Part shown: in pieces, positions 40,144-64,000 of the stretch | How the letters are laid out: every line of letters starts with the position of its first letter | Position numbering within the stretch: the stretch's first letter is position 1 | DNA from: Anthoceros angustus | Taxonomy: Eukaryota; Plantae; Anthocerotophyta | Assembly: GCA_010909165.1 (NCBI GenBank) | Contig: VJWM01000016.1 | Span: 1 to 64,000, forward strand | DNA length: 64,000 bases | Direction: 5' to 3' | Position numbers and translations under genes: made by a program | The notes under the pieces: generated by a model | The model's input: the letters and a program-made list of their open reading frames with translations, nothing else | What the model was told of the DNA's origin: nothing | The model's database searches: none

Positions 40144-41738
40144 TTATGCAGCAGCAGCCTTTCTGAGTCTGACTCGAGCCTCCAGCGGGTACTTCATTGT
40201 CACAGTCAAGATTTGGCTATAAGTAAGGTCAACAACCTCTTTGCCCTTGGGCGGAAGCCACTCGAATGACTGCACAAGCCTGCCAAGGATGAGGTGCATG
40301 TGGAGCATTGCCAAGCCCATCCCAGGACAGATCCGTCGTCCTGCGCCGAAGGGTATCATGGTGATGGGGCCCTTGGTTCCCGTGATGTCTGTAGGAGGCC
40401 CCTCCAGGAACCTTTCTGGCATGAACGTCAAGGCGTTAGGCCACACCTCTGGGTCTGTTGACAACTTGCGCAGGCAGGCCAGGAGCTCTGCGTTCTTGGG
40501 GATGTCGTAACCTCCCAGCCTCTCCTTCTGCGTGGTCTGGTGGGCGAGAGTGAAGTTCCCAGGAGGGTGAAGCCTCAGAGTCTCCAGCACCACCGCCTTG
40601 AGGTACGGCAGAGACTCCAGGTCGGACTGGGCCAAAGGCCTGTCTCCACACACCGACCGGATCTCGGCTGCAAGCTTGGCCTGCTGCGCCTTACCGTTGA
40701 CCAGCTCGGCTAGCGCGAACTGCATCGCACTGGCCGTCGTGTCTGTGCCACCGTTCAGGAGCTCTGAGCAGAGAGAAATGTAGTCGGAGTCGTCCAGGTC
40801 CAGCAGGCCTTTCTCGGCCTCGACTGCCAGGGAGTCCACGTAGCTGCCCAAGATGGGAGTGCGTGCTTTTCGTGCGTTCCGAATCTCTGTGATGATGGGA
40901 AGCACAATTTCGATCAAAGTGTTTCTGGCTTGCCTGCAGTTCTCGTAGTGAGCCTTGTTCACCAGCCAATGCAGAAGCGGGATGTAGTCCCCAATGTTCG
41001 GTCCAGCCAGCGCGAACATCTTGTTACTGATGTTGTCAATGGCTCTCACCTTCCCATCCTCCAGCACCTACACCATTCCACAGATTCTCAGGCCACAAAC
41101 TTCTTCATGCACAGACAGATGGATGCAGACGAATTCCTCACCTTCCCAAAGCAGATGTAGAGTAGCAAAGTGAAGCCCAAGAAGCGGATATGCTGTAGCA
41201 CCGGGATTGTGGCGTCGGGACTCTCTTCACAATGGTTCCTTAACGTCTCCACCAGAGCCTCAATCTTCATCGCCCGAAAGGGAGCCATACCCGCTAGCCT
41301 GGACTGGCTCAGCGCGTTCATCACAAGATTCTTCCTCAGTTCCTTCCATCTGGGCCCGTACACCGAGGTATTGATGGTTCTGTGACGGTTGGTCAGGAAG
41401 TGTCTGGAGAAGCGCTGCGGGCGGGAATCAAAACGCCCGCCTGCTCCAAACAGAAACTCTTTCACTTCTGCTCTGCCGCTCACGAAGATGTTGGGCATGG
41501 TTCCTAACCAGACGGTCAGAACTGGTCCGTATTTCGCAGTCCAGGAATTCAGCAGATCATCTCTGTTTTTAGCTGTGAAATGCAACAAACTCCCCACAAT
41601 GGGTAGGCCCCCAGGACCAGGAGGAAGACGGGCTCTGAAGAACAGGTGGTACAAGACTAGAGCAGCGGTGACTGAACCAACCAGAGCAGGGACTAGGACA
41701 CTTGGAGTCACCGCGGCGAGCAGCCCAGCTTGCTCCAT
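40144..41738 (-). CDS. Cytochrome P450, clan 71, CYP77/CYP89-like; exons 41738-41142 and 41067-40144 (506 aa)
   Basis: N-terminal membrane anchor, PPGPGGLPIVG hinge, GGTDTT I-helix, ETLR, PERF and FGAGRRICPG heme motifs are all intact. A 74-nt GT-AG phase-0 intron (41141-41068) joins the two ORFs in frame. Confidence 0.95.
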
Positions 41739-42092
41739 CGGTACAGGCCGGGGGCGCGCAGAACCGCAAAGCCCAGGGATTTCAATAAGGAGTGAGTGAT
41801 CCCAGCCTCCTAGCAGTGTAGGCTACCGTCCCGAACATATGGAAACCGCCCTCAAGCTCGAGGGATGTGGTGAATGAAGTTGCTTGGCGACAGCTACGTA
41901 CCTGCGCAGGCACTGAAGCACCGGCTACCCCTGTGATATACAAGTGGGGGGAGACCCCAAATCTCCACCCTCCAGCATCAAGAATGGTGCACGGATTGAT
42001 GCTGACACATATCTTCCATTCCAGTCTTGAAAGTCACAACGTAGGCATGCCCAGTGTGGGTCAAGAACATGATATACTTGTTGTCCTGACAA

Positions 42093-42204
42093 AGCTTCAA
42101 CAGCATGATCATCTCGCAACTGCTTCAAGAGCATGATCATCTTGCAACTGCTTCAAGAGCGTGATCACCTTGCAACTGCTTCAAGAGCACGATCATCTTG
42201 CAAC
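42093..42204. repeat. 28-bp tandem repeat x4 upstream of the P450
   Basis: TGCTTCAAGAGCATGATCATCTTGCAAC at 42121, 42149 and 42177, plus a variant at ~42093. Confidence 0.9.
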
Positions 42205-44001
42205 AATCTTCCCATGCATGAACAATCCTCGGCCGATAACAACAACACTCAAGTTGGCCAGGTTAACTGCGGGCTCCCTGTCCCAGGGAAGTTAAGTTGC
42301 ACTGTTTCCTTGATTTGAAGTAACAGAGAATTATCGCGTCCCTCATACGTATCCAGGTTTCTGGATGAAGGGCACCTGCTCTGTATTATTGGCCAGCAAC
42401 TAGTGAGAGCCCCACGATGTCATGAGCGTCTACCGGTGATAGCTCAACAGACCAGCTCCACAACCAGTTCGAAAATCAACCAAGGGCAAAACTCTTCCCG
42501 CAGGTATCGTGCAGCGCATAGAGTGGCATCCAGCCAGAACCGGTACCATGGAGCTTTAATAAGTCTTCTTTGGGCGGATCAGCGTCTAGATGGGGTCTGG
42601 ATCTAAATAATGTTCGAAGTAAAATTATCTATACATATCCAAGGGACAAAAATGTGGAATCAAAACAACCAAGCATCTCAAGTCACGGGTCAGTGTAAAT
42701 TATGTTCTCACGATAACTTAAATATTTGCTTAGATACTAATCATCACTAATATTTACAAGAGTTTTTAATTGGTAAAATTATTAAAGTCTTTTATTGATA
42801 AAAAATAAATTAGGTAATAATTTTAAGAATCTTTAATTCATAAAATAAAATTGAGAATCTATATGTAGTATCTAAAATTAGGCATGCAACTATGGGACTA
42901 CATATGCATTAAAGCTTCATCTATCATCTAGCCAAGTATACTATGAGGATTATACTCATCTTTTATTGAAATAAATACCAAGGCTTTATAAAGATTTAAA
43001 AATTACTAGTCAAGCTCAGAGGATGATACTCATCTTGGTGTATGCATGTGCACTTGCAAAGCAAATTAGTGGGCAGTTTAGATAGGAACTCGAACTCCTG
43101 GACCGAAAGCTCACTAATTTAATAAACAGTAGGAGGATGGTCACATACCATGGCAAGGTATTGTGAAGACAACTAGGTTCCACATGACTATTAAAATATA
43201 ACTTGAGACCAGAATCCTCAAAGGACAATATCCTTCCTTCGTAAGAACATTTGCTATATTTAAAAAGACTTCCATTGCTATCACTTTGCAACATTAGATT
43301 ACTTGGCCTTCAATTGTTCCGTATACCGTCCCTACCTATCAGCAATTGCCTTATTATCTCTTGGCTTGTGTGTATCCTCTCACCGTCACATTCAATCAAA
43401 ACCCCATACAAAGAAATATGCAAGGTGAGAAAAAGACATGAAAGTGAGACCTAGACTATCTAATATTTGTATGTAATGAGAACCCTAGGGTACTTATTTA
43501 TAATTATGATCAACTGGGCACATAATAACACAACTTATTTCCATCCTCATGGTTGTACACACGAGTACAATTAAAGAATTCTACATACTTTGAACGAAAT
43601 GATTTTTCTTAGCAATAGGTATTGCTTTATTATGCAAATAATACAAGACCTTTTCCTAGGAATAGGTTTAGCTTTATTATGCAAATCATACAAGACCAGA
43701 CAAAGCTCAACAGCTAGGTACCAGCCCTCAACAGCAAACATTAAAAAGACGGAGAACTCAAAAGAAACAAAGCCGCAAATTTAAGCGTGAGTTGGCCAAC
43801 AACTTTAGGGCAAGCTAGGTAGAATTGCAGAGGCTCATTGAGAAATTTCTCCACTAGTTTCTCAGGAGCAAAAAAACTCTAGTCACCTATCACTTAATCA
43901 AGGAAAATTTGGAACTTAATGAATCAAGTGATTCCACTTTGTTTTGATTATGAACCATTTCAAAGCTGCATTGGAAAGTTATCAACATCAATTGCATTGA
44001 T

Positions 44002-45210
44002 TTATTTTTTGCGGCGTCGTCGTGTTGCATCCCTTAGTGCAGATGCTTCGTCTAATATGAACTGACGATATTCTTCAATTTTAGTCATTTGAAGCACATT
44101 TGGGTTGCACATGTCATCCAAATATAGTTCTAGTGGGAAATTTAAGATGATCTTATATGGCTCATTGGCACGTGATCTACGCCCATCATTAACTCGTATT
44201 CCACATAGATACATCTTAATTTTCATCTTATCCGATGCATATGCAGCTTGTTTTGCAGACGTGTAACTGCCACAATAACATTGTTTCCCAAATGATTTCT
44301 TTTTCACATATGGTTGTACACTTTGGTTGCGACTTCTTGTTGTTGGACGATTTGAGGGAGATGAATGTTCCTCATCAGTTGAAGTAGGGCACCATATATA
44401 ACAATCAAATGTGCCAATAAGTTTATTGACACTAACTCCTTGATATTGTTCCTCATCTTCATTGACACTTTTTATCTGCGCATATTTTGTTTCAACCATT
44501 TCCTGCATGTGTTTCCAGATAGATGCCCTTGGGCTAATATCTTGACCTGACCTAGTTGGCCTGATAGGCTTCAATTTTTCTGGGCGTGCTCGACTCCCTT
44601 GTGCAATTTCTTCATATTCCGATCCAATTGCAAGCTGATTGGATGAAGTTGATGCTTCGTGTGCTTCAAGTTTGGATGGTTGGTGTACTTGATCCATGGA
44701 TTCAAAATGCACATCAGTGCATTCGCGATCCACGTTCTTTATGCAACGACTCGGGTCCTTTACCCACTCAGCATGTGAAACACGAATTGTTAGAGGCTCA
44801 TTCATGGATGCACCGCGTTGAAATAATGCTGGATTTACAATATCTATAAATTCTCGACTAGATGGTGGTATATAGTCGATCCAGGGCCGCAAACATCCTT
44901 TTGAACATTCCTCTGTGTCTGAATCAGATATATATATATATTCATCGTTTGATGTGTACCCTTCTTCTTTTGATTCCTCGCTGTTTGACAAGAACCCTTT
45001 TTCCTGTGATTCCTCGCTGTCTGACAAGAACCCTTTTCCCTGTGATTCCTCGCTGTCTGACAAGAACCCTTTTCCCTGTGATTCCTCGCTGTCTGACAAG
45101 AACCCTTTTCCCTGTGATTCCTCACCATCTTCCATGCTGTACCCTCCTTCCTCCGATTCCTCGCCGCTTGACGTGCACCCTTTTCCCTTTGATTTCTTGC
45201 CGTCAAACAT
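44002..45210 (-). CDS. Intronless 402-aa ORF: acidic 12-aa repeats and a divergent AP2-like C-terminal domain
   Basis: GKQCYCGSYTSAKQAAYASDKMKIKMY...LNFPLELYLDDM...MTKIEEYRQFI resembles the AP2-subfamily pattern GRQVYLGGYD.EE.AARAYD.AA.KYWG...NFP...Y..E...M...EY. The true start is uncertain. Confidence 0.6.
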   Translation of the reverse strand: MFDGKKSKGKGCTSSGEESEEGGYSMEDGEESQGKGFLSDSEESQGKGFLSDSEESQGKGFLSDSEESQEKGFLSNSEESKEEGYTSNDEYIYISDSDTEECSKGCLRPWIDYIPPSSREFIDIVNPALFQRGASMNEPLTIRVSHAEWVKDPSRCIKNVDRECTDVHFESMDQVHQPSKLEAHEASTSSNQLAIGSEYEEIAQGSRARPEKLKPIRPTRSGQDISPRASIWKHMQEMVETKYAQIKSVNEDEEQYQGVSVNKLIGTFDCYIWCPTSTDEEHSSPSNRPTTRSRNQSVQPYVKKKSFGKQCYCGSYTSAKQAAYASDKMKIKMYLCGIRVNDGRRSRANEPYKIILNFPLELYLDDMCNPNVLQMTKIEEYRQFILDEASALRDATRRRRKK

Positions 45211-45270
45211 CCTGCACGTTCTTTCCTCCGATATCTCGTTGTCTGACCGGCACCCTTTTCCCTCGGATTC
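44961..45270 (-). repeat. 36-bp coding tandem repeat (EESQGKGFLSDS) with degenerate flanking units
   Basis: TGATTCCTCGCTGTCTGACAAGAACCCTTTTCCCTG repeated about 4 times, with degenerate 36-41-nt units up to ~45270. Confidence 0.9.
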
Positions 45271-47621
45271 CCAGGTGATTTACAAAGTAATATTATGCTA
45301 TAGGTTCACGCGCTAAAAATGGAGTGAGAAGGAATTCTAGCCAAGACCAATGAGCCGAGTCACTTGTCCCTTAGTTAAAAGTAATGCAAAAGGATACACA
45401 CATATATAGAGAAAATTAAGAATTAGTGATTATTTTAAGAATTAGTGAAAATATGAAAATTCAAGCTCATGTAGTCACTTGTACTTTGTCGTTATAAGTA
45501 ATGCCTGAGGATACACGCATATATAGTGATTTTTTTGAAGTTTATGAAAAAATCTCAACATCCAAGGCCATACCGAGAAGTTCTTGATGTAAATATATCA
45601 AGACTCAAGGACTATTTATACCTAAATATATTGGTAGAAAATAATTTTATATATTACTTTTATAAGATTTTCAAGTTCAAGGATTAAATAGTTGTTAAAG
45701 TTCCAAAAAATATCTAAAATAAGAATAAGCTATATTTAGGTTTTGTATTCCTTTTGGTAATACCGGTCCTCGGCTTGTGGACCAAAAGTGACATTCTTAA
45801 CGTGAAGTTTCCTTGATTTTTGGGTTCTCTCCGTTTTCCTTCTTTTTCGGGTTCTCTTTGCTTTCCTTCTTTTTCGAGTTCTCTCCGCTATTTTTCTATT
45901 TACTTCCAGCTCACTTTTTCTCAGAAACCAACTTAGAATGGGTTCGCAAGTAGAAAAGCTCTAGAACTACTCTACTTTAAAACATATCTCAATATTTTAA
46001 TTAATTACTATATATTTTAAAAACTAAATATTTAGAGAAACTCTATTACCACCCTTATATTTTATAAATCCAGATGTATATAAAAACTCTTAGCAAAATA
46101 TGTCTAAAATCATAATTACAACCCTTATATTTTATAAATTCAAATATATATAAACACTCTAATATATTTAAGCACTCTGGCAAAATATATCCAAACGCAT
46201 GGGTTTTCTCACTTCTATATTGTCCTCTATCAAGACCCTTGCCATTGTATCCATGAGGTACTTGCTCCCCATGGCCGGTTGGATCTTTTTTAGCACTTTG
46301 TGTTACACAAGCAGTTTTCCTGGCCTCGCTCAAGGAAGCATTTCACAAGTAGTGGCAATTAGTGGTCATCGTTGGAAATTTGTTTTTTGAAAGGGCCAAA
46401 ATATCACTACAAGAAAACCATCCCCAAATATCAATCTTTCCTTTTATAAAAAATGCAGCAAACATATCACATATTCTTCATAACTCTTGGTTCTTCATAT
46501 TTACGCTCTCTTCCTAGGCCTCCAACTCTAGATCTAACTTTGGCCAAGACTAAGATACTTTGAAGTTGCGTTTCTCGCACGAGGTAAGCACTTGCTTTCA
46601 TATAAGCACTTCCTCAGCAGATAACCAAGCAAACAAATCTAATATGCAAATATAGGTGCAAACCAATAATAATAAGAGAGAGTAGCTTACATGTTGTGGC
46701 ACAAACACATTGTCCCTACGAGAACAACGCGCAAATTTCTTATACATTGCTCTCGGAGTCATAGCTTTGGCCTACTCACAACAGTCTCGTATTGCATTTC
46801 TAGAGGACATGCTATGATTTGAGCTTGTCCTTTGTGAAAGAGTCTATATATACTAGCCCTCGGCATCGGCATGTTTCTAAAATATCCTATTGGCATCAGC
46901 ATATGTCGAAAATATCCTAAGAATACACTATAATTTGCAAGGGATATCCTAAAGCATATTACTTGTGCTTATCCACTTAGCTATTGCTAACCATGTTTAA
47001 TTAACACAAGCAATTAAGATTAATTAATACTAACTACTTACTTAAAGATGAGCAATTAAATTATTTAATGCTAATAAAAACTAAACCCAAGCGCTAGATT
47101 AGTGTCATACGGCATGATACGTTGAACATCAAACTCTTGCTAAGACTAACACTAAGACTAAGACTATGCTAAGATTAGACTAAGACTAACCAAATGATCT
47201 ATAAATCATCTAGATATCTCATTCTATTAAATCTAAAACTATTATATTACTGTTTATTTCTTCTTCTTAGTAATCAAGAACTAGACGGGGATAAAAATAT
47301 ACTCAGACCTCAGCTATGAACTTCCATAAATGAACTTGGATCATTAATTTGCTAGCACCCAATCTATTATTTGAACCTCACCATCAATATGTGGAAACAA
47401 ATAGCTTTCACTAGTACACTTATATTCCTCTATTAACTTAATTTTCCCGATGCTAACGATTATTTTGACCTTGACATGGTTATGTGATAAATCTAAAGCT
47501 CGTAATTCGTATACCAGAATTCCTTTTTTATTCTATCATAATTTGTTTATCCTATTTAAACTTTTTATAGCAGCATCCGCATTCCTAGAACAAATCCTGG
47601 GACTCTTAGCCTGTGAGTAGA

Positions 47622-47940
47622 GGTTCCCAGTCTGGGAGCCTCTGCTCACATGTCAAATCCCGTTTCCACTGTTTGATTCTTCGATCGGAGGAAATGGCAG
47701 AGAACTTAATCTTTTGCGCCAACGCTTTGTGAGCTTCACTCCCCTGTTCAATCCTGTCCTGAGTGTGGCTAAGAGAGGGTTCCCAGCCTGGGAGCCTCTA
47801 CTCACGTTTTAGATCTCGTTTCCACTGTTGGATGCCTCGATCTGAAGAAATGGCATGCGGAGAGAACTTAATCTTTTGCTCCAACACTTTGTGAGCTTCA
47901 CTCCCCTGTTCAATCCTATCCTGAGTGTGGGCAAGAGAGT
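47622..47940. repeat. ~156-bp tandem duplication
   Basis: GGTTCCCAG.CTGGGAGCCTCT...GAGAACTTAATCTTTTGC...GAGCTTCACTCCCCTGTTCAATCCT at 47622 and 47778. Confidence 0.9.
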
Positions 47941-47959
47941 GCTGACTACCGCCCGATGT

Positions 47960-48520
47960 ATTAAGATGGAAGAAGAAATGGAGGGCGCTGAGGAACAGTT
48001 TGATGATGAATGCGGTGAGGCTGGCCAGTACAAGCTTTGCTGGTATATTGGCCCTTGCGTGCGGTGAAGATGGAGGCTCTGATACACAGACTGAGGAAAC
48101 ATGCGAAAGACGCACCCGATTCCACTTTCCCAGTGCTAGGTAGGGGAAATCCGGTTCCTAGCCTTCACTCTGTCGGTTCCCATCTTGTTTGGGAAGGTGA
48201 TTCTGGTATAGCAGTTAGTGCTTGCAAGTTGCATCCATGCCTGAGTTTCGGCCTGAGAATGCATCAGATCGCATCTGAGGAAGAGTAGGCGACATTGCAG
48301 CCGATTGCCTGACAGTGGAATTGAGTACCAAATGGTTCGCTTGGATTCCAGGATACATCGGGGACTAAATTCCTTGTCTGCGCTTGCCGGTGACTCCTTG
48401 TAAAAGGCTCACAAGGAGAAATGCAGGAAAAACAGGCAGCCTTTCCTTGGAATTAACTGTGCTTCCCATCGATATCAACACAGAGAATCCGGCAGGCAGG
48501 GAAGGAAGATATGTATTGTC
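47960..48520 (+). repeat. Dispersed repeat family X, copy 2
   Basis: Shares CCCAGTGCTAGGTAGGGG, TTTGGGAAGGTGATTCTGG and GGATTCCAGGATACATCGGGGACTA with the other copies. Confidence 0.85.
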
Positions 48521-49124: not shown

Positions 49125-50264
49125 CTACATGTCTGCAGCTCCTCCACCCAGACTCACAGCGGGGAGGTCTGTGGAAGACGAGGTGACCGGAGTGGAGTCC
49201 CAGGTGACGCCGGTCAGGGTCCAGGCGGTGGCCTTGTCCTTGGTGTAGTAGCCCGAGAAGGAGAAGAATTCATAGAACACCTGCTTGGTGAGGGCGTTGC
49301 CGATCTTATAGCTGCCGGTGCCGTCGTTGGTGGGGTAGAAGTACCACCACACGCGCGTGTCGTAGTTGTGGTTCACGTTCACGGCCTGGATGTCGCGGTT
49401 GCTGGAGAGGTTGGCGTTGAGGTAGGAGTGGTAGATGGTGACTGCGTTGCGCGCCGGGCCGGCGTCGAAGTTGCCCACCGTCCACCAGGTGCTGGCGTGA
49501 GTCTTGTCCGCGGTAACGCCCACAGCCTCGGTCAGGGCGTAGGCGTACCAGGTGACGCCGCCGTACACGTACGTGAGCTGGACGGGGCCGGTGCCCACCT
49601 TGTCCCTGATATCCACGCTGTCCACCGGAGGCACCGGGTCTGTGGACGGCACGATGGTGAAGACAGTGGCGCCGTCCAGGGTGTAGACGCCATTGAGGGA
49701 GAAGAACTCGTACGTTACCTGCTTGCCCAGGGCGTTCCCGATCCTGTAGGTGCCGGTGCTGCCCACCTCGTAGAAGTACCACAAGATGCGCTCTTGGTAC
49801 AGCTTGTACACGTCCAGCACCTGTATGACGGCGTTGTTGGATATGTAGGATTGGAAGCCGTAGGAGCTGTAGATGGTGACGGCGTTGGTCGGCCCGGAGT
49901 CCAAGCCGATCTGCCACCAGGTGCCCGGGTAGGTTTTGTCCAGAGTTCCGGCGAAGCCCCCGCCGTCGGTGTAGAGGTAGTAGGTGATGCCGCCCAGCTG
50001 GAATGTGAGCTGGACGAGGCCGTTGCCCACGCGGCCCCTGATGTCCGCGGTGCCGGCTTTGGCAGGAGGTGGGGGAGGAGGAGACGGCGGTGGAGGAGGA
50101 GGAGATGGCGGCGGGGGAGGAGGGGAGCGAGGAGGAGGAGGAGGAGAGGCCCGGGGAGGAGGAGGACTTGATAGGATTCTCTGAGCCTCCACATCCATGG
50201 CCAGGCTAGCCAAGAGCAAGGCCACTGCCGCTCCCATAACCCACAGCCTGCCGCATGTCGCCAT
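49125..50264 (-). CDS. Secreted Ser-Pro-rich (extensin-like) protein with 2 repeats of a ~145-aa probable beta-trefoil domain (gene A, 379 aa)
   Basis: MATCGRLWVMGAAVALLLASLAMDVEA signal peptide, SPPPP tracts, repeats starting DIR at 50045 and 49613, strong GC3 bias, and an intact paralog at 62330-63937. Confidence 0.9.
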   Translation of the reverse strand: MATCGRLWVMGAAVALLLASLAMDVEAQRILSSPPPPRASPPPPPRSPPPPPPSPPPPPPSPPPPPPAKAGTADIRGRVGNGLVQLTFQLGGITYYLYTDGGGFAGTLDKTYPGTWWQIGLDSGPTNAVTIYSSYGFQSYISNNAVIQVLDVYKLYQERILWYFYEVGSTGTYRIGNALGKQVTYEFFSLNGVYTLDGATVFTIVPSTDPVPPVDSVDIRDKVGTGPVQLTYVYGGVTWYAYALTEAVGVTADKTHASTWWTVGNFDAGPARNAVTIYHSYLNANLSSNRDIQAVNVNHNYDTRVWWYFYPTNDGTGSYKIGNALTKQVFYEFFSFSGYYTKDKATAWTLTGVTWDSTPVTSSSTDLPAVSLGGGAADM

Positions 50265-52154
50265 TGCGCATGCGCCTCGCGCAAAGGACGCGTTAACGTA
50301 TCTGGGTTCCTGCACATGCAATTCATCCATCCATGGCCAACACACACACTGCACCTGGTCAGCTTGATTTAAAACTAATCAGTAGAAAATTTAGACCGTA
50401 CACATCTTAATTCTAAAGGCGACAACTCAAACCGTCGCCCACTACAAAAGTAAATGTGCACGACAGGAATGTGAAGACACTTGAGGTGATGGGCTTGCAA
50501 GGTGATAGAGGCCCAACCACACAGCGCTGCAGGTAGGTGGTTGCGATCGGGGACCACTGAATCAACGCTCTTTGCCGCTTGCTCCAAACGAGTTCCCCAG
50601 GCCACTTTATATACATGTGGGCACACACTGCATATTATTATTTTTATGAGCAGGGAAGGCCCGGCTGGTGGCCACACCACACAATTCCTTCCCCTGTAGG
50701 ATTGGTACGCATCTTTCGCATGGAGCTGAGAATCGTACGAATGCGCATGCAGGCCTCAACGGCGCAACCGCGGCGAATAGACACTGTTCAGACATTGCGG
50801 GGTTTGAAATCTACGGCACCCTCGATTGAATACGTGGAAACCGCACTCGTCCTCCTACTACTGGTTCTGCTAATGCCAAAAAGGGAAAACAACAAAAACG
50901 CACTAGTACTGTTCCGGAATTCAGGGACAACGTGTTGCTGCAGGCCAGGCGCATCCGGACATTGTGGACACATGAGAGCTATCGACTTCCGTCACCATGA
51001 CTTTTCGAATAAAAGATAGTTGTTAATACGCCTGCCCCGGGGTCCTGGCGCGTCCTGCCGCATCATCCCGGCCACGCTTTTGTTCACTCGGCCACTGACC
51101 GTCGACGTTACAGCGCAGAAGCATCAAGCAGGCCTCGGGGCGGGGGCAGGCCTAGGGTAGGGAGCATGCACCAAGTTCATGACGCATACTGTGCACAAGC
51201 ATAGCCAATGGATGAAAGGCTCATCAAGCAGGCAAACACTGGGGGAGGGGAAAGCATGGGAGGCCTAGGGGCTAGGCCAGGGGCATGCACCAGCCAAATG
51301 ATGCACCGCGCTCGTTTCCTCACAGATTCCTCACTGATTTCGGACACGGCCATGTGCTAAACTTGTAAAGTGCACTCGGCTTCGACTGACTCGTTTACAG
51401 ATGGGTGCATTATGCACACGTTGCGATTTACAAAATTGTGAAGCTATCTGTCTTTGGTGGACAACGGCCGTCCAGGCAGGGTTTCATGTCCCTGGCCAGC
51501 CACACAGCGATGTGTGGTAAGTGGCAACTTCTATCAATGCCAAGGTACATACTGCGCAGCGACGACTTCTAGACGTCAGCCAAGTCAAGCTCGACACTCC
51601 ATTGGCAGGGGGCGGCGGCAAACCTGTGTACGCACATGCTCTGTTATTTGAACTTGTGTATTAAAGTATTTTCTCTCTCTGAGTCACATCAGTAATTTGG
51701 AAGAACGGAGGCTAGGAAGCTACCAATACAGGATATGCACATCTGTTCCTAATGAATAGATAGGTACGTACATCTTTCTTTAATATATACAACAAAAATA
51801 AATATCCTAGTCCAGGAGGTTCCTAACCCGACGCTCACGGAATCATATTTTGATTTGTGCATATCAAGCTACCTTCTTTCGCTTTCCCCGTCGCCTAAAT
51901 CTCATCAGCAAATACACGCCATGCTCACCGTCCCGCTCGTGTGGCACAGACCCCGATGCGCATCCGACGCACCGTGCGGCCGGCATCCTCTCGGACGAAA
52001 CCGCGCATTGAGTTGTCAGCTTGCCTCTCGTTTCTACCCCTTGCCTCCCATGCTGCGCTGGCTACAAAGAAGCAACAATGTGATGGCAAGCTCATAAGGC
52101 CAGCTACCTTCACCTCAACCTCTCTGGATAGACTGCCTACACACAGACATACCC

Positions 52155-54246
52155 ATGGGTGTGACTACTGACGCTTGGGCTGGATGGTACGAGCAAGACG
52201 GAACCAAAGAGCCCATCTCTGCGGGATCCGAGTTCACCTTCCTCATCACCGCTGCTGATGGCGTCACGCTCTCCGGTTCGGGTGTCGACGGTCTGGGCTC
52301 CTGGACTTGGAAAGGCCAGATCGATAGCAGCCGGGATGTGGTTCTTGAGAAGCGGTATGTAGGTGGCAAGCCACATGACCATGTCATTACCTACACCGGC
52401 ACCAGGAGTACGTCCGCTGCTGGCGTGGACACAATCGACGGCACATGGAAACTTGACTCCAATTCTGGCGCCTTCCAACTTCAAAAGCAGCCATATGTAC
52501 GAAGTCCTTCCCATTCTTCACTTGCATCTTTCCATCTTGGGCATTTCATGTCCTAGCTAGCTCGCATCTAGACTAGGCCCTCCTTTCATGGATTCTTTCA
52601 CCAGTTCCACTTGAGGCAAGAAACGTCCATGTCGGTAAATTTGCTTACTAGGATTTCTCGCTTCTTGCTGGTGAATCAGGCGCTGGAGGAGAGCTACACT
52701 GGCTACTACGAGCAGGACGGTACTCGGTACCCCGTGACCACCACCCTGTATACCACCCCCGACAACAAGATCTACGGCAGTGGCTCCGACGATCAAGGGA
52801 ATTTCACCTGGACCGGTATACCCAGCTAGGAGCTGTCTACGTTCTTACCAAGAAAATGTTTGAATCGGTTGCTTGTCAATGCGCGTGTGCGCCCTCCAGT
52901 GGGTTGGATCTGAGAACTCGTCAAATTCATGGTTGATGCTCTCCATCGGAGCCCCGCAGGTGAAATCGATCCTACTACCGGCAAAGTCACACTTCACAAA
53001 CTCTACCTCGACTCCACAGTATCGTTCGATTACACTGGCACTAAGTCTTTTGAGAATGGCCGGAATGTGATTAAAGGTTTGTGGGGCGATGCCTCTGCCA
53101 ACAACAAATTCTTCCTTGGAGTCGAGGTAAACCAAGCTTAAAACCCGAAGGCTAGCGCTGAATTCATTCGTTTTCTATATTCAGCTCCACACATTAATTC
53201 ATTTGCTTGCTGTAGACTTGCTTTAGATTTCTTGCAATAGCCACCTTTCGTGATTTGGAAATGTGGCAGGGGACGCCTTACACAGGACCCTGGACAGGAT
53301 ATTATGTGCAAGATGGGCACCAACACCCCGGCACCAATTTCACGTTGGATGTGGCAGGCTCCAGTTACACTGGCCATGGTTACGACGACGTCGGTGAATT
53401 CATATGGGAAGGTTTGTATAACCACCCACCTTCTTCCACTTGTGACACCCTTTGCTCTCATGACCAAAATGATGGATGAATATCTAAGCATGCCTACCTG
53501 CTTGCCTGCCTGCAGGTGAACTTGTGGGCAAGGACCAGGTCGTCCTCCGCAAGAAGTACCTCGACGCCAACGGCGCACCCAGCGCGAACCCCGACGTCCT
53601 CTACACCGGCACTCTAGCCTTCAAGGATGGCAAGCAGGTGATTGACGGCACCTGGAACGTCCCCGGCGACACCGCCACCGACCTGTTCCACTTCGAGCTG
53701 CCATCGCCTCCACCGGATGCACGGCCTTTCGGCATCCCCGTGTCCATCCGCTCCACAGGCACACCCAACGCCTATCTCCGCATCGACGGGTCCGGCGGGG
53801 GTGTGGTGAATCTGCAAGTGGGTCGATTCACCTTCGAGAGGTTCCAGCTGGTTCTGCAGGGCCTGACCGCCGACGGAGAGGAAGTGTACGCCATCAAGTC
53901 GCTCCTCTTCAACCAGTATCTGCACCTCGATCCCACTGTGTCCGAAGAACAGAAACCCAGTGCCGACACCCCCACCTTTCACCCCAAAGGCGTCGGCCGC
54001 ACTTACCCAGTCAAGACTGTGGATGAACTCACCAAGCTCACAGTGCGCTTGAACAGCGTAGACGGCTTCACAAGCCATTCCTTGAGGCTTCTCAACTCCG
54101 GCATCCCCGACCTTCCCAATGTCTTCCTCCGCCTCAACCCTGACAACATTGCTGCAGCCAAATCTGACAACGGAAGTGGCGAGGTGAACGGCCAGACTTA
54201 CATTGGCCCCTATGAGAGACTACTCATTGAGCCATATCCGTACTGA
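52155..54246 (+). CDS. Five-exon gene C: three ~100-110-aa repeats plus a fascin-like beta-trefoil domain (505 aa); exons 52155-52496, 52680-52815, 52960-53126, 53270-53411, 53516-54246
   Basis: All four introns are GT-AG with compatible phases (0,1,0,1) and the total is 1518 nt in frame. The motif (W/Y).G.Y.QDG...G.G.D..G...W.G...V.L.K.Y...Y.G...I.G.W recurs three times. An additional upstream exon is not excluded. Confidence 0.85.
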
Positions 54247-54449
54247 GATATAATGTATATAGCTCGGGGCTGTTGTGCTCTGCATTGTCAGGCAGAGCTT
54301 GGCCAACCCTTGTGAGTCGATGTGGAACATTTGGGTCAAGGGAGTTATATTCCTTACCCATTGTCTTGTAAGCAATACGCATAACCTACATATGACTTGA
54401 CTGGAAAGACAAGACGTTGCCACAAAATCAAGTAGACTATACAGCAAGA

Positions 54450-54554
54450 CTGCTCCTCAGCCCTGCTATGGTTGTGGGTGTCTCAATACCAAAACCCTGT
54501 TCTGCTCCTCAGCCCTGCTCTGGGTGTGGGTGTCTCAATACCAAAACCCTGTTT
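54450..54554. repeat. ~52-bp direct duplication downstream of gene C
   Basis: CTGCTCCTCAGCCCTGCT.TGG.TGTGGGTGTCTCAATACCAAAACCCTGTT occurs twice. Confidence 0.9.
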
Positions 54555-56599
54555 TGTCTGGTATTTATCAATGGCCACAACTATTGAGCAGCAGCACCAA
54601 CTTGAGCGTGAACATCTACACCCACTTTGGCGTGAATACCAACATTGCTTTCAAGACTGCTAACCCTCGCAGAAGCCACTGCACTCTTGAAACGTAAACC
54701 GTTCCCTTCACCGTCAACACAAACTCCACCCATGTCACTGCTAGCACCGTTAGCGCCTGTTCTGTCCCGATCACTCGGGAGAATCTTCCTCGCCTTGGCC
54801 AACTATGGCATACCAAAGCGGAGAGAGGGGACGGGGCACTTTTTTTCGCGCGAAACTCGTACAATACGCCACAATACGTAGGCATGTATCAGAATATACT
54901 ACCAAATCTAGTACGGATGTGCTACTCACCACACATGCTCATGTGTGCGCTTTGGCGCTCTCCCGAGCAAGTGACAATGTGATTCTATTGGTCTTTTTCT
55001 TGGGGAAGCCAAGATGTAAATTTAGAGAGAAGGAAGAAACAAGATCATACTCCAAACAGAAAGAGGGGATGGTGATGGAACATGCAAGCAGCCTTCACAG
55101 ATAGCTCCGCATATATTTAGGTGCCCTGAACATCGTTGAAACAACTTCAATCTCCACATCATGCCCAAGTTTTTGAACAACATCATGCTACTACCAAGTT
55201 TGGTACAAATTGAGACCTTGCATTCCAACCAGATTATTGTAGGTGGCCATCAGTTGATCCCAAACTGCATCCTGCACATGATGGTTGCAAACGTCCTACG
55301 TATCAGCTAATCCTTGAAGCTTGACAAGTCTGCAGGCTGGTACACCAGAACTTAATAGCTTCCTGTCATGCACAAAGAGAGTCACAACACCACCTATTGT
55401 GCCCTCAACTTCATGCGGGCTTCACGTCTTCTCTCCTTCACACAACTGCAATCCGTACAAGTAAAAACGACGGACCTCCACCAATCAGCCACAGCAGTGC
55501 CTGAACTTCTAACATCAGCACTCAGCCACAGCACCACATGAACTTCCAACATTAGCAACAATTAGCCAGTTCGTGAATGCTTTGATAAAGCTACACTTTG
55601 CTGAGGGCTCCATGTGTAAGAGTGCATATGTCCTTCAGTGTTTCCAATTTGAGATTTGTACTTTTCAGCTTCATGCACCATGTGTTAGGAAGCATAGTTG
55701 AAGGCATTCCTTGCGAATAATGTGATAGTTTGAATTGAAGAGGGTCTCTTGTGGTCATTCTAACAAAGCTATGACTGGCAGGAACCTGAGCAGGAAGAAG
55801 AGACTCAAAATGCAGATAAAGCTGCTGAGATGTTGAGGCTGCAAGCGACCAAAGACACGGCCAGGTTGCAAGAACGGATGCTATTCACTTGCCTAGGGGA
55901 AATGGCCTCGCAGTCGAATATGCAGTTGTGATGGGTATCCTTCGCCACATGCTGGATGAAGTGAAGCAAGCAATAGACTTGCACGCAGCTGCTGAAACAT
56001 AGAAGGCAACTCTTGAGTCTCCTATAACAGAAAGAATGAGATTTGTAGAGGGCAGTACCAGTACATCGCAAAATTGCACAGCTTGCATCATACTCTATTT
56101 CCTACTGCAGCCTTCCTATGGCGCATCCTTTGCCTCCCCTAACACAAAGCATACAAGAGCTGCTACTGCAACTTCAAGCCCTAGGGTTGAGGACCAAGCC
56201 TACTCCATGGCATCCTCCATGGCCTTCATGCTCACGCGGAGGCCGTTCAGCGTGGCCTACACTATCTGAGCGGTGCTCCGCGTCTCGCTCAATGTTACCC
56301 TCAGATCCTATTCGCCCGCAGCACCACCTCCAGAAGCCCGCGTTCGGGCATTGGGTGTTCCTGGCACCTGCCTTGCCCGCCACGCTTCCTCCTCCGACAC
56401 CATGTTTGACTCCCTATAGTCTCGCTTCCTCCCTCTTGTGCTTGCCCTCCGCGGAGTAGGGTCGTCTGTTCACTCTGCTCTCCCTCTCCTTCCAACATCG
56501 TCTCTGCTCCGTCACTACTATCAACTCCCTGGCTCCTCCTCCTCCTCCTCCGGTGTGCCACTGGATGCTGGCCTCCACCACCATGAGCTCGCGGCCTCC

Positions 56600-59310
56600 T
56601 CCGCTCCTCCCCTCCGCCTCACCGAGCCTTGAGTGCAGGCACTACTTCGCCCGTTTGAGATCCCGCGTTGGAATTGCCAATTCTACCCATACACCGCCTT
56701 CGGCAAGCGCACAGGCACGCTCCAATCCCACTCTCCCGCCGCAATTGCCGCCAGCACTGCTGGCGTTGGCTCTCCGTCTGCCGATTGCTCGGCGTCGGCC
56801 CCTCCGCACCATCCATGGCGGCGAAGGGAGTGCCACCATCGCCACGCCCTCGTTTGGCCTCAGGCTGGGCGGCGGCAACCATCGCCCTGCCACCACCATG
56901 CCGAGCTCGCCTCGGCGCTCGATGGGCGACCATCACATCGCCACCGCCAAGCTGAGCTCGACCTCGGCTTGGGCGTGGCGGCCATCGCCGCCGCCATGCC
57001 ATCCTTCACCCTCGGCTCGATGGCGGCGGCCATCGCAGCCCGGCATCCGCTATCCGCCGTCCCGACCTCGCCGGGGTTTCATTCACATTGGATGGCGGCT
57101 TCCTCCGGCCGCCATCGCTAGCCTCTGCGCCGCCAAGCCGCGGCGGCAGCCAGCCCGCCCTCAGGCGGCTCCGCTCCGGCGTCGCGGCGGCTTCCACCCC
57201 CTCCGGTGCCAAGGGGAGGCACACAAGGGGAGGGCACGGTGCCCTCCCCCTCAGGGGCGTGCCTCCACCTCGGCCCCGCCTCCATCGCCAGGGGAGGCAG
57301 TGCCCTCCCGGCACCACTCCTGCAGGCGCCTCCACCTCGGCGCCCCCACCTCCATCGCGGAAGGGCAGTGCCCTCCCCGCCTCCACGGATGCACGACCGC
57401 CCTGCACTTGCTGCCTCCATCGTCGGGGAGGCACGTTCCCTCCCCAGCGCCTCCCGTGGGCGCCTCCCCGCCAGCGCTCCCGCAACCAAACCACCCGCTC
57501 TCCTCCTCCATCACCCTCTCCCTCGCATGCGCGAGCTCAGCGTGTTTAAACCGCCTTGATCTTCGAAGCCACACGCCTCACCTTGCTCCTCCTCCTCCCT
57601 CGCCCTTCTCGCTCCTCCTTTGCTCCTTCCTGCTGCGCCTTCGCCCTTGCTGTCCCACAATGCTCACATCGCTATTGTGCATGGCGCCTCTGCATGCCGA
57701 GGCGGGGATGTTATTATGATGCAAAATCACCTTGCCTCCATCTCATTGCTGCGGCCCACAGGCCTCCCAATTTCGCCTCCGGCGAGCTATGCATCGACCC
57801 TTGCCTTTGGCGGTGAAGTTCTCGTCCAGTGCTTGGCATCTGCGTGCCATAGAAAAGAAGGCGAGGATTTGGGGCCCGTGAGGCTCAACGTGCCAGGCCC
57901 ACTCACGAGGCCCGTGGAGACAATCATCTCGTAGCCGGATCGGACCTCCTCCCCTCCGCCTCACCGAGCCTTGAGGGCACTACTTACGCTCTTCGTTGAG
58001 ATCCCGCGTTGGGCCAATTCTACCCATACACCGCCTTGCCCGCCACGCCTCCAATCCCACTCTCCCGCAATTGCCGCCCGGCCCCGCTGGCGTTGGCTCT
58101 CCGTCTGGCGATTGCTCGGCGTCGGCCCCTCCGCACCATCCATGGCGGCGAAGGGAGTGCCACCATCGCCACGCCCTCGTTTGGCCTCAGGCTGGGCGGC
58201 GGCAACCATCGCCCTGCCACCACCATGCCGAGCTCAGCCTCGCGCTCGATGGAAGCAGCCATCACACTGCCACCGCCAAGCCTGAGCTCGACCTCTGGCT
58301 TGGGCGTGGCGGCTCATCCATCGCCGCCATGCCATCCTTCACCCTCGGCTCGATGGCGGCCATCGCGGCGGCGCCGTCCGCTATCCCGCCGTCCCGACCT
58401 CGCCGGGGTTTCATTCACATTGGATGGCGGCTTCCTCGCCCGCCGCCGCTAGCCTCTGCGCCGCCAAGCCGGCGGCAGCCAGCCCCTCGCGGCTCCGCTC
58501 CGGCGTCGCGGCTTCCACCCCCTCCGGTGCCAAGGGGAGGCACCTGAGGGAGGCACGGTGCCCTCCCCGCCTCCCCAGGGGCGTGCCTCCACCTCGGCCC
58601 CGCCTCCATCGCCAAGGGGAGGGCACTCCCTCCCGGCTTTGCTCCTGTGAGCGCCTCCACCTCGGCCCCACCTCCATCGCCGAAGGGCAGTGCCCTCCCG
58701 CACCCGCTCCACGGATGCACGACCGCCCTCTGCACTTGCTGCCTCCATCGTCGGGGAGGCAGTGCCCTCCCCAGCGCCTCCGTGGGCGCCTCACCTCGGC
58801 TCCCGCAACCAAACCACTTCGCTCCTCCTCCATCACCCTCTCCCTCTGCATGCGCGAGCTCGCGTGTTTAGGCACCGGCGCAGTCTTCCAGAAGCCACAC
58901 GCCTCACCTTATCTGCTCCCTCCTCCTCCTCGCCCTTCTACGCTCCCTCCTTTGCTCCTTCCTGCTGTACTTGCGCCCTTCGCCCTTGCTGTCCACAATG
59001 CTCACATCGCTATTGTCCGCATGACGCCTCTGCATGCCGAGGCAGGGATGTTATTATGATGCAAAATCCTGCTTGCCTCCATCTCTGACTGCTGCGGCCC
59101 ACAACGGGCCTCCCAATTTACGCCTCCGCGGCAGGCTATGCATGCAGCCCTTGCCTTTGGCAGCTGAAGTTCTCGTCCCAGGTGCTTGGCATACTGCGTG
59201 CCATAGAAAAGAAGGCACTGAGGATTTGGGGCCCCGTGAGGCTCCAACAGCTGCACAGGCCCCACTCACGAGGCCCGTGGAGACAATCATCTCGTAGCAC
59301 CGGATCAGAC
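56600..59310. repeat. ~1.35-kb GC-rich tandem duplication
   Basis: The unit start CCTCCTCCCCTCCGCCTCACCGAGCCTTGAG occurs at ~56604 and ~57946, and the unit end CCCACTCACGAGGCCCGTGGAGACAATCATCTCGTAGC at ~57899 and ~59262. Confidence 0.9.
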
Positions 59311-62329: not shown

Positions 62330-63937
62330 TCAAACGTCCGCAGCTCCCCTGAGGCTCAGAGGGGACAGGCCAGCATGCGCAGAAGACCAGGTGGAGGTGA
62401 CGATGGTGAAGGCAGTAGCGCCATCCAGAGTGTAGGCGCCGTTGAAGGAGAAGAACTGGTTGGCGACCTGCTTGCCCTGGACGTTAGCGATCTTGTACGC
62501 AGCTTGGCCGGATTGGGTGGTCTCGTAGAAGTACCACCAGATGCGCGTTCCGTACACCTTGGTGGTGTCCACCACCTGAGAGTCCCGGTTATTGGAGAGG
62601 AAGCCATCGCTGTAGGAGTTGAACAAGGTGACGAGGTTGGGCCCCGCGGAGTCGAAGCCCACCTGCCACCAGGTGCCGGGGTAGTTTTTGTCCGTGGTGC
62701 CTGCCACTCCGGCGCCGGCAGCGTAGGCGTACCAGGTGGTGGTGCCCACAACGTAGGCGAGCTGGATGGGACCCGTGCCCACCCGGCCCCTGATGTCCAC
62801 CGTGCCGGCCGGAGGAGGCGTCGCCCAGGTGACCCCGGTCAGGGTCCAGGCGGTGGCCCCCTCTTTTGTGTACACGCCCGTGGCCGACAGGAATTCCTTG
62901 AACACCTGCTTCCCGAGGACGTTTCCGATCTTGTAGGTCCCGGCGCTGTCGATGGTGGGGTAGAAGTACCACCACACGCGGGTGTCGTAGTTGTGGTTCA
63001 CGTTCACGACCTGGACGTCGCGGTTGTTGGATAGGTTGGCGTTGGTGTAGGAGTGGTAGATGGTGACTGCGGTGCGCGCGGGGCCGGCGTCGAAGTTGCC
63101 CACCGTCCACCAGGTGCTGGGGTGGTTCTTGTCCGTGGTGACGCCCACGCCCTCGCCCGTGGCGTAGGCGAGCCAGGTGGTGGTGCCGGACACGTAGGTG
63201 AGCTGGACGGGGCCTGTGCCGACCTTGTCGCGGATGTCCACGGTGCCCGGGGGAGGGACCGGGTCCGGGGAGGGCACGATGGTGAAGGCGGTGGCCCCGT
63301 CCTGGGTGTAGATGCCGTTGAGGGAGAAGAACTCGTACAACACCTGCTTGCCCAGGGCGTTGCCGATTTTGAAGGTGCCGGTGCCGGCGCTCGTCTCGTA
63401 GAAGTACCACCAGATGCGCTGCTGGTATGCCTTGGAGGTGTCCAGCACCTGGGCGTCGCGGTTGTTGGAAATGTAGGACTGGTAGCCGAAGGAGCTGTAG
63501 ATGGTGACGGCATTGGTTGGCCCGGAGTCGAAGCCGATCTGCCACCAGATGCCCGGGTAGGTTTTGTCCAGAGTTCCGGCGAAGCCGCCGCCGTCGGTGT
63601 ACAGGTAGTAGGTGGTGGTGCCCACCAGATAGGTCAGCTGGACGAGGCCGGTGCCCACCCTGCCCCTGATGTCCGAGGTGCCGGCTTTAGCAGCAGGAGG
63701 AGGAGGGGGAGATGGCGGCGGCGGGGGGCTTGGAGGAGGAGGCGACGGCGGCGGGGGAGGCGAGCTAGGAGGAGGAGGAGACGCAGATGGCGGTGGCGGG
63801 GAGGGAGTAGGAGGAGGAGGAGAGGCCTTGGGCGGAGGAGGACTTGACAATCGCTGAGCCTCGGCATCCATGGCCAGGCCGAAGAGCATAGCCACCAATG
63901 CCACTGCTCCCACAACCCGCAGCCTGGAGGTCGCCAT
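62330..63937 (-). CDS. Secreted Ser-Pro-rich protein with 3 repeats of the ~145-aa probable beta-trefoil domain (gene B, 535 aa), paralog of gene A
   Basis: MATSRLRVVGAVALVAMLFGLAMDAEA signal peptide, SPPPP tract, repeats starting DIR at 63673, 63238 and 62797 (spacing 145 and 147 aa), no stops or frameshifts. Confidence 0.92.
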   Translation of the reverse strand: MATSRLRVVGAVALVAMLFGLAMDAEAQRLSSPPPPKASPPPPTPSPPPPSASPPPPSSPPPPPSPPPPSPPPPPSPPPPPAAKAGTSDIRGRVGTGLVQLTYLVGTTTYYLYTDGGGFAGTLDKTYPGIWWQIGFDSGPTNAVTIYSSFGYQSYISNNRDAQVLDTSKAYQQRIWWYFYETSAGTGTFKIGNALGKQVLYEFFSLNGIYTQDGATAFTIVPSPDPVPPPGTVDIRDKVGTGPVQLTYVSGTTTWLAYATGEGVGVTTDKNHPSTWWTVGNFDAGPARTAVTIYHSYTNANLSNNRDVQVVNVNHNYDTRVWWYFYPTIDSAGTYKIGNVLGKQVFKEFLSATGVYTKEGATAWTLTGVTWATPPPAGTVDIRGRVGTGPIQLAYVVGTTTWYAYAAGAGVAGTTDKNYPGTWWQVGFDSAGPNLVTLFNSYSDGFLSNNRDSQVVDTTKVYGTRIWWYFYETTQSGQAAYKIANVQGKQVANQFFSFNGAYTLDGATAFTIVTSTWSSAHAGLSPLSLRGAADV

Positions 63938-64000
63938 TGCGGGAATCCGTGGGCAACCCTTGAAAGAAGCCCTGGCCTGTACAACCAATTCATCGACCCA

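Follow-up and report, generated by a model that had tools for sequence, protein, structure and literature searches.

What is encoded at positions 52155-54246 of the plus strand in the first 64,000 nucleotides (nt) of contig VJWM01000016.1 (assembly GCA_010909165.1) of the hornwort Anthoceros angustus, the stretch that we call the window, and what might its product do? An earlier note, made from the sequence alone, had described three probable avidin- or calycin-like beta-barrel repeats fused to a fascin-like beta-trefoil, an architecture that it recognised from no plant family. We find that the locus is, on balance, probably an intact, expressed nuclear gene whose soluble product joins three barrels, a proline-rich linker and a trefoil of the AbfB/CBM42 type, and that would serve as a multivalent, lectin-like binder in the cytosol. 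The structural part of this statement, barrels plus trefoil, is well supported; the function as a cytosolic, multivalent binder of the chimerolectin type would follow by analogy. Protein searches were run exon by exon and not with the joined 505-residue product. None of the exons matched a model in Pfam, NCBIfam or PADLOC and no plant family matched the protein.

The coding sequence, as read from the DNA and the location of splice motifs, comprises 505 codons and a TGA stop codon (1518 nt) over five exons (Table 1). All four introns run from GT to AG, in phases 0, 1, 0 and 1 in order, and all four interrupt the part that encodes the barrels, whereas the part for the trefoil is free of introns. 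The first ATG downstream of an in-frame stop is that at 52155, and the protein begins with MGVTTDAWAGWYEQDG, which already lies within repeat 1 and holds no hydrophobic leader. The cleanly spliceable 505-residue protein without a signal peptide, as the earlier note had it, thus stands, with five open exons and no hydrophobic stretch at the N-terminus. N-myristoylation at the MG start was considered and dropped, residue 6 being Asp or Glu and, in our own reading, off-consensus.

The three diverged repeats share every motif that had been listed for them. Strand 1 reads WAGWYEQDG, YTGYYEQDG and WTGYYVQDG in repeats 1, 2 and 3, respectively, the G-x-G-x-D motif GSGVDGLGSWTWKG, GSGSDDQGNFTWTG and GHGYDDVGEFIWEG, the V-x-L-x-K-x-Y motif VVLEKRY, VTLHKLY and VVLRKKY, and the I-x-G-x-W motif IDGTW, IKGLW and IDGTW; YTG is also present. 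The repeats recover one another in tblastn searches within the window at E values of 1e-5 to 1e-7. Among 1.84 billion representatives, a repeat-unit profile (A3) matched 686 proteins at E<=1e-3, 113 at E<=1e-10 and 10 at E<=1e-30, most of them with at least two copies of the barrel and some with up to eight. Named sources are the ancyromonads Fabomonas and Nutomonas, Salpingoeca infusionum, Hydra vulgaris and a Gracilaria transcriptome, and many further sources are metagenomic or metatranscriptomic contigs. In the opposite direction, a profile of 67 non-hornwort units (the full alignment holds 72 sequences) matched exon 1 over its full length with 74.5 bits, and every exon matched the correct half of the barrel, with E values per comparison of 3e-25 to 1e-8 (8e-15 to 1e-8 for exons 2-5). 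Pfam thresholds were reached by none of the 72 repeat units, and no Pfam family covers the barrel in any of 81 full-length members at E<=1e-5. Judged by these comparisons, the barrels are homologous to a large eukaryotic domain family outside Pfam, whose range is broad and mainly eukaryotic. With its avidin fold and at least 686 cluster representatives across eukaryotes, the barrel is a candidate new domain family.

This family is repeatedly joined to TIR and RING/U-box domains. TIR_2 is the commonest Pfam match beside the barrel (five of 81 members, E<=1e-5), RING/U-box domains recur, and DnaJ, WD40, subtilase, MIP and PLAT each accompany barrels in one or two proteins. The tandem-barrel proteins of Fabomonas, Nutomonas, Salpingoeca, Hydra and rotifers carry the same domain as the window, usually in two to eight tandem copies, and share with it the signature WxGxYxQxG...GxGxDxxGxF...KxYxGxHxVxYxG...IxGxW...GxFxL, but these proteins either lack a partner domain or pair the barrel with TIR, RING/U-box, DnaJ or WD40, whereas in the hornwort the partner is a trefoil. 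In P0018, P0020, P0021 and P0025 (from Salpingoeca, Hydra and others) the barrel adjoins TIR, of which PADLOC detects the TIR part alone; the barrel-TIR proteins of the choanoflagellate and of Hydra possibly have a sensor-TIR architecture. The genomic contexts of P0012 and P0135 held nothing informative.

An AlphaFold2 (AF2) model of exon 1, built on the 72-sequence alignment, is all-beta with eight long strands and one short strand (predicted local distance difference test [pLDDT] 86.9, predicted template modelling score [pTM] 0.81) and has the eight-stranded antiparallel up-and-down barrel that characterises the avidin family (PF01382). Foldseek against the Protein Data Bank (PDB) placed agroavidin, rhizavidin, shwanavidin, afifavidin and streptavidin in the lead (template modelling [TM] score 0.60-0.68, E 5e-3 to 4e-2) at 12-18% identity, and a shape search of the ESM Atlas returned unnamed bacterial clusters, a rotifer TIR_2 cluster and a PF26421 Avidin_like cluster (TM 0.71-0.78). 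By contrast, the gathering score of the Avidin hidden Markov model (HMM; PF01382) was reached by no exon of the window and no repeat unit: a single unit of the 72 showed an Avidin match, at E 0.011, and the Nothoceros protein P0006, described below, a sub-threshold one (E 0.0045, 17.8 bits against a cut-off of 24). The repeat profile found no match among PDB sequences, and no avidin at E<=10; phmmer searches of PDB sequences with exons 1 and 5 gave chance matches only. The confident model therefore describes the repeat as a generic eight-stranded up-and-down barrel of which avidin is the closest natural example. The predicted eight-stranded barrels of the earlier note are thus upheld; the avidin-likeness is one of fold, all HMM matches being below threshold, and membership of the avidin family is not supported. 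Members of the avidin/streptavidin family such as rhizavidin, agroavidin and tamavidin are tetramers of single barrels, whereas the window protein carries three barrels on one chain, joined to a trefoil, and these barrels bear no significant sequence relation to avidins. Across the barrel family the positions G10, G41, G43, D45, G48, G54, K66, Y68, Y80, G82, G96, W98 and F107 are conserved, in alternation along the strands. Conserved polar residues have the same parity as the hydrophobic ones, which may indicate a polar cluster or pocket inside the barrel.

The C-terminal domain has its own microbial relatives. A phmmer search of 5.8e9 proteins with exon 5 led to P0004 (E 6.5e-7), a 160-residue protein from a bacterial-looking metagenome contig that is a near-perfect three-fold repeat. 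BLASTP aligned the two across the whole domain at 2e-12, and a second alignment placed subdomain gamma on the middle repeat of P0004; subdomains alpha and gamma each align with several of its repeats, and the full-length alignment spans all three. By sequence, the domain is a beta-trefoil, with three homologous subdomains of ~40-55 residues in a domain of ~150-170. A profile search yielded 162 proteins of ~155 residues from Actinomycetota, Nannocystis, Hymenobacter, Aspergillus, Talaromyces, Amanita, Laccaria, Pholiota and the sponge Ephydatia, named at their source 'fascin domain-containing protein', 'Ricin B lectin domain-containing' or 'phospholipase C' (JGI), or unnamed, some of them carrying precomputed PF05270. 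The four hornwort trefoils aligned with 46 microbial ones in hhalign at 99.7% probability (E 3e-26, 145 columns), and a profile built without the hornwort rows recognised residues 74-237 of exon 5 with 60.9 bits. These alignments place the C-terminus, as a homologue, in a trefoil family of bacteria, fungi and a sponge.

Within the trefoil superfamily this family appears, by Pfam and PDB comparison, to be nearest to AbfB/CBM42 and not to fascin. Among PDB sequences its profile matched Symfoil designs (2.5e-7) and the CBM42 structures 3kmv (1.8e-5) and 3akf (2e-3), and Pfam assigned AbfB to 36 of 58 members (best E 4.9e-8), RicinB_lectin_2 to eight and Fascin to none. The Fascin model (PF06268) matched neither the window domain nor its 58 relatives at E<=0.01, and a single trefoil is present, not four; the ricin-B models (PF00652 and PF14200) did not match the window either, and its subdomains end in E-x-F/L, not in Q-x-W. 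Of the 'fascin-like' microbial trefoil, the bacterial and fungal relationship holds, and the 'fascin' label derives solely from the names that NCBI gives to relatives and from Atlas feature neighbours. Atlas features of one family member led to trefoil clusters only (AbfB, ricin-B and Fascin/FRG1/DUF7910; 0.93-0.97), and a feature search with exon 5 scored only 0.86, its matches all being trefoil clusters. The repetition seen in the C-terminal domain is real: FLRLN..EVNGQ..YERL in subdomain gamma echoes YLRIDG..VNLQ..FERF in alpha. The family motif is retained in these two subdomains; beta lacks VNxQ and bears the insert TFHPKGVG, which does not vary among the four hornwort sequences. The stand-alone trefoils of ~155 residues from Actinomycetota, Myxococcota, Bacteroidota, ascomycetes, basidiomycetes and Ephydatia are 26-35% identical to the window domain at 95-97% coverage and share with it FPNV(F/Y)LRxDG...G.VNxQ...G.(Y/W)E.F, but they are near-perfectly three-fold and lack partner domains, whereas the hornwort trefoils have a diverged, insert-bearing beta and are fused to barrels in all cases except P0172. 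The likeness to CBM42/AbfB (PF05270; 3kmv, 3akf), likewise a three-fold trefoil of ~140-160 residues, lies at the level of the family profile: the window domain does not reach PF05270, has no attached glycoside hydrolase and has a remodelled middle subdomain.

Is this gene expressed and maintained? Parts of the window occur in four sequencing runs, none of them recorded as RNA, so that their RNA nature is a guess. Contigs aligned to the window skip all four introns: introns 1, 2 and 3 are skipped by a 762-nt X1 contig and again by a 727-nt X2 contig, intron 4 is skipped by a separate 909-nt X2 contig, and X1 loose ends flanking intron 4 on both sides bear the letters of the adjacent exon. The X1 skips, together with the skips of introns 2 and 4, show GT..AG at the predicted places; the X2 skips of introns 1 and 3 miss these places by 1-3 bases and have additional letters where the two sides meet. 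The predicted junctions are thus seen in use, in copies 92-96% identical to the window. The exact window copy was found only as short, 100%-identical X1 pieces (53282-53394 and 54063-54400) at a depth of 26-30, as against 300-600 for the 92-96% identical copy. Splicing is therefore established for the gene family, and transcription of the exact copy is likely. In exon 1, third codon positions hold 12 of the 18 differences listed between the window and the spliced contigs (hand count). The gene is under purifying selection: a comparison of 200 codons with the orthologue L003 gives dN/dS, the ratio of non-synonymous to synonymous change, as 0.20, the differences numbering 24, 14 and 55 at first, second and third codon positions, respectively.

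The word searches for relatives returned almost only the contigs of one run, owing to their length window. Three genomic contigs of that kind, from SRR33208241, carry the barrel plus trefoil architecture. L003, the orthologue, is 80% identical in amino acids and agrees with the window gene in exon structure up to the end of its contig; L004 is a three-barrel paralogue whose barrel 2 contains an acidic insert and whose barrel 1 has an extra intron, and L001 is a paralogue with one barrel and the trefoil. At 1248-1488 of L004, a run of ~45 Asp/Glu replaces strands 1-2 of barrel 2. A phase-1 intron after F-x-W-x-G recurs in L001 and L004 as well as in barrels 2 and 3 of the window, which argues that the barrel unit was duplicated together with its intron, later lost from barrel 1 of the window and L003. 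The top match of the exhaustive search, P0006, is a transcript of Nothoceros aenigmaticus with four barrels and then a frameshift, after which the trefoil can be seen by eye in the +1 frame. Its last two barrels are nearly identical, and it may be an assembly chimera of paralogues. P0172, also from Nothoceros, is a trefoil-only protein, 45% identical. The combined architecture was seen only in data of hornwort type, where it forms a small family of paralogues with one to four barrels, and a literature search for this architecture in hornworts, or for TIR with avidin-like domains, turned up nothing relevant. In P0030 (L005-L007, metatranscriptome-like contigs of 1.4 kb), a linker rich in Pro, Gly and Met connects two barrels with an FRG1/fascin-like trefoil; the joining of barrel and trefoil is thus not unique to hornworts, though the trefoil subfamily differs (FRG1-like).

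How the two modules came together in a plant lineage bears on the trefoil in particular. In a quick maximum-likelihood tree of 58 sequences, the four hornwort trefoils form one clade on a long stem (Shimodaira-Hasegawa-like approximate likelihood ratio test [SH-aLRT] 100). The backbone among bacteria, fungi and sponge lacks resolution, so that no donor can be named. Other plants were absent from the matches listed for trefoil or barrel, which come mostly from unnamed sources. The patchy distribution of the trefoil over bacteria, fungi, a sponge and hornworts, taken with its intron-free coding part, makes it a candidate case of gene transfer, and horizontal acquisition is possible on this evidence. 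Hornworts are a plant lineage that joins the barrel with a microbial-type carbohydrate-module trefoil.

CBM42-type trefoils bind sugars, and barrels of the avidin fold take up small ligands in a pocket inside the barrel. From these two kinds of binding module, the lack of a signal peptide and the existence of a multigene, selected and transcribed family, we infer a binding function. The protein would be a multivalent, cytosolic, chimerolectin-like binder whose trefoil may contact carbohydrate through alpha and gamma, which keep the polar motif LRxD/N ... VNxQ ... ExF, beta having perhaps been remodelled into a hornwort-specific conserved loop. Each of the three barrels could offer an internal pocket, putatively lined by Q14, D45, K66, Y68, H76, Y80 and W98, which have the strand parity of hydrophobic core residues, and would also add valency or spacing. 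Its most likely role would be that of an abundant defence or storage-type binding protein, for which fungal cytoplasmic lectins and tamavidin are precedents. For hornwort biology, this transcribed, selected and lineage-restricted family is a candidate for glycan or ligand binding, defence or cyanobacterial symbiosis. Bryophytes offer a functional precedent in the FB lectins (PF07367) of liverworts and mosses, which are fungal-derived, horizontally acquired, cytoplasmic, microbial-type, bryophyte-limited and insecticidal (PMC12513842). The precedent is one of function only: FB lectins are unrelated to the window protein in fold and family, and FB genes are not reported from hornworts in PMC12513842.

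Several observations weigh against the interpretation as a lectin-like binder. A cytosolic location sits oddly with a module for cell-wall sugars, and the partners of the barrel elsewhere (TIR, RING/U-box, DnaJ and WD40) suggest roles in protein interaction or signalling and not those of a lectin. Designed barrels and OmpA-type (membrane) eight-stranded barrels match the exon 1 model as well as avidins do, so that the fold is uninformative about the ligand. The window trefoil has no match in Pfam even at E<=10, and a single-sequence AF2 model of exon 5 reaches a pLDDT of only 41. Finally, the long spliced contigs diverge from the window by 4-8%, so that they stem from a paralogue, from an allele or from a sister species. 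The TIR and RING partners speak for the principal alternative, in which the barrels recognise proteins or peptides or act as signalling adaptors and the product is a cytosolic scaffold or sensor with the trefoil as another interaction surface. The substrate receptor GID4 and the nucleotide receptor Cap15, both eight-stranded barrels, would be its models, and we regard it as unlikely though deserving of serious attention. Rather doubtful is a scheme in which the barrel is an ancient eukaryotic ligand-sensing domain, so far without a name, that serves as the sensor of immune-type TIR and RING/U-box proteins in animals and protists and that hornworts, alone among plants, fused to a horizontally transferred trefoil for defence or symbiosis. 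As ligand it would then bind the end of a peptide, a signal derived from a nucleotide or some small molecule, and the barrel, kept or acquired by hornworts, would have become part of a lineage-specific and abundant protein.

That the barrels are true avidin-type vitamin binders, sequestering biotin or a related cofactor in a tamavidin-like defence, strikes us as improbable. Avidins are the best natural structural matches, the Nothoceros relative comes near the Avidin model, and W-Y-x-Q-x-G in strand 1 presumably resembles the motif of streptavidin, but the low identity to avidins, the lone weak match among the repeat units and the lack of any PDB avidin for the profile all stand against it. 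Very improbable, in our judgement, is a cytoskeletal protein whose trefoil acts like fascin or FRG1 and is actin-binding or RNA-associated: NCBI names of relatives include 'fascin domain-containing', the Fascin/FRG1/DUF7910 clusters are among the Atlas neighbours and P0030, from an uncultured eukaryote, pairs two barrels with an FRG1-like trefoil, yet Pfam assigns AbfB to 36 of the 58 members and Fascin to none, and fascin bundles actin with four trefoils, against the one present here. We give scarcely any credence to an annotation artefact, a contaminant or a functionless, decaying copy. The shallow, fragmentary coverage of the exact copy could be cited for it; the 505 codons open through five exons, the canonical splice sites used in close copies, the low dN/dS, the occurrence of relatives in a further genomic run and in a Nothoceros transcriptome of independent origin, and the plant-like adjoining genes, including those for a cytochrome P450 and an extensin-like protein, speak against it.

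Table 1. Layout of the barrel-trefoil gene in the window (positions in nt; profile positions refer to the barrel profile)
Feature	Positions	Strand	Description
Exon 1	52155..52496	+	Whole barrel repeat 1, 114 residues; begins at ATG, without signal peptide
Intron 1	52497..52679	+	183 nt, GT..AG, phase 0; separates repeats 1 and 2; X1 contig skips from 52496 to 52680, X2 skip nearly the same
Exon 2	52680..52815	+	Barrel 2, first half; ends after F-x-W-x-G, phase 1; profile positions 5-47
Intron 2	52816..52959	+	144 nt, within barrel 2; skipped in X1 and X2 contigs; same place in L001 and L004
Exon 3	52960..53126	+	Barrel 2, second half; profile positions 53-99
Intron 3	53127..53269	+	143 nt, phase 0; separates repeats 2 and 3; skipped in X1 and X2 contigs
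Exon 4	53270..53411	+	Barrel 3, first half; profile positions 6-47; 100%-identical 113-nt X1 piece
Intron 4	53412..53515	+	104 nt, phase 1; within barrel 3, at the position that intron 2 takes in barrel 2; skipped in X2 contig
Exon 5 start	53516..53697	+	Barrel 3, second half; profile positions 53-100
Pro-rich linker LPSPPPDARPFGIP	53698..53736	+	Between barrel and trefoil profile matches
Beta-trefoil domain	53737..54228	+	60.9 bits against profile without hornwort rows
Trefoil subdomain alpha	~53740-53859	+	YLRIDG..VNLQ..FERF retained
Trefoil subdomain beta	~53881-54054	+	Diverged; insert TFHPKGVG, conserved in hornworts
Trefoil subdomain gamma	~54067-54234	+	FLRLN..EVNGQ..YERL retained
Stop codon TGA	54244..54246	+	Sequence reading

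Around the gene, an open reading frame at 49125-50354 (-) combines a start resembling a signal peptide with an extensin-like SP(n) stalk and with two repeats, each ~145 residues long and rich in Trp; it has no Pfam match and is unrelated to the barrel-trefoil gene. Two further open reading frames, at 62330-63988 (-; 552 residues) and 56553-57719 (+; 388 residues), are rich in guanine plus cytosine (GC; 59-64%) and without a Pfam match. The cytochrome P450 gene at 40144-41738 (-) has at least two exons (Pfam p450, 2.4e-64 and 1.9e-19). Some 200 nt past the stop codon of the barrel-trefoil gene, at ~54452-54556 (+), two tandem copies of ~52 nt (…GCTCCTCAGCCCTGCT.TGG.TGTGGGTGTCTCAATACCAAAACCCTGTT…) were seen by eye, and 42001-48000 forms a low-GC block of 37-39%, against ~50% in the rest of the window.

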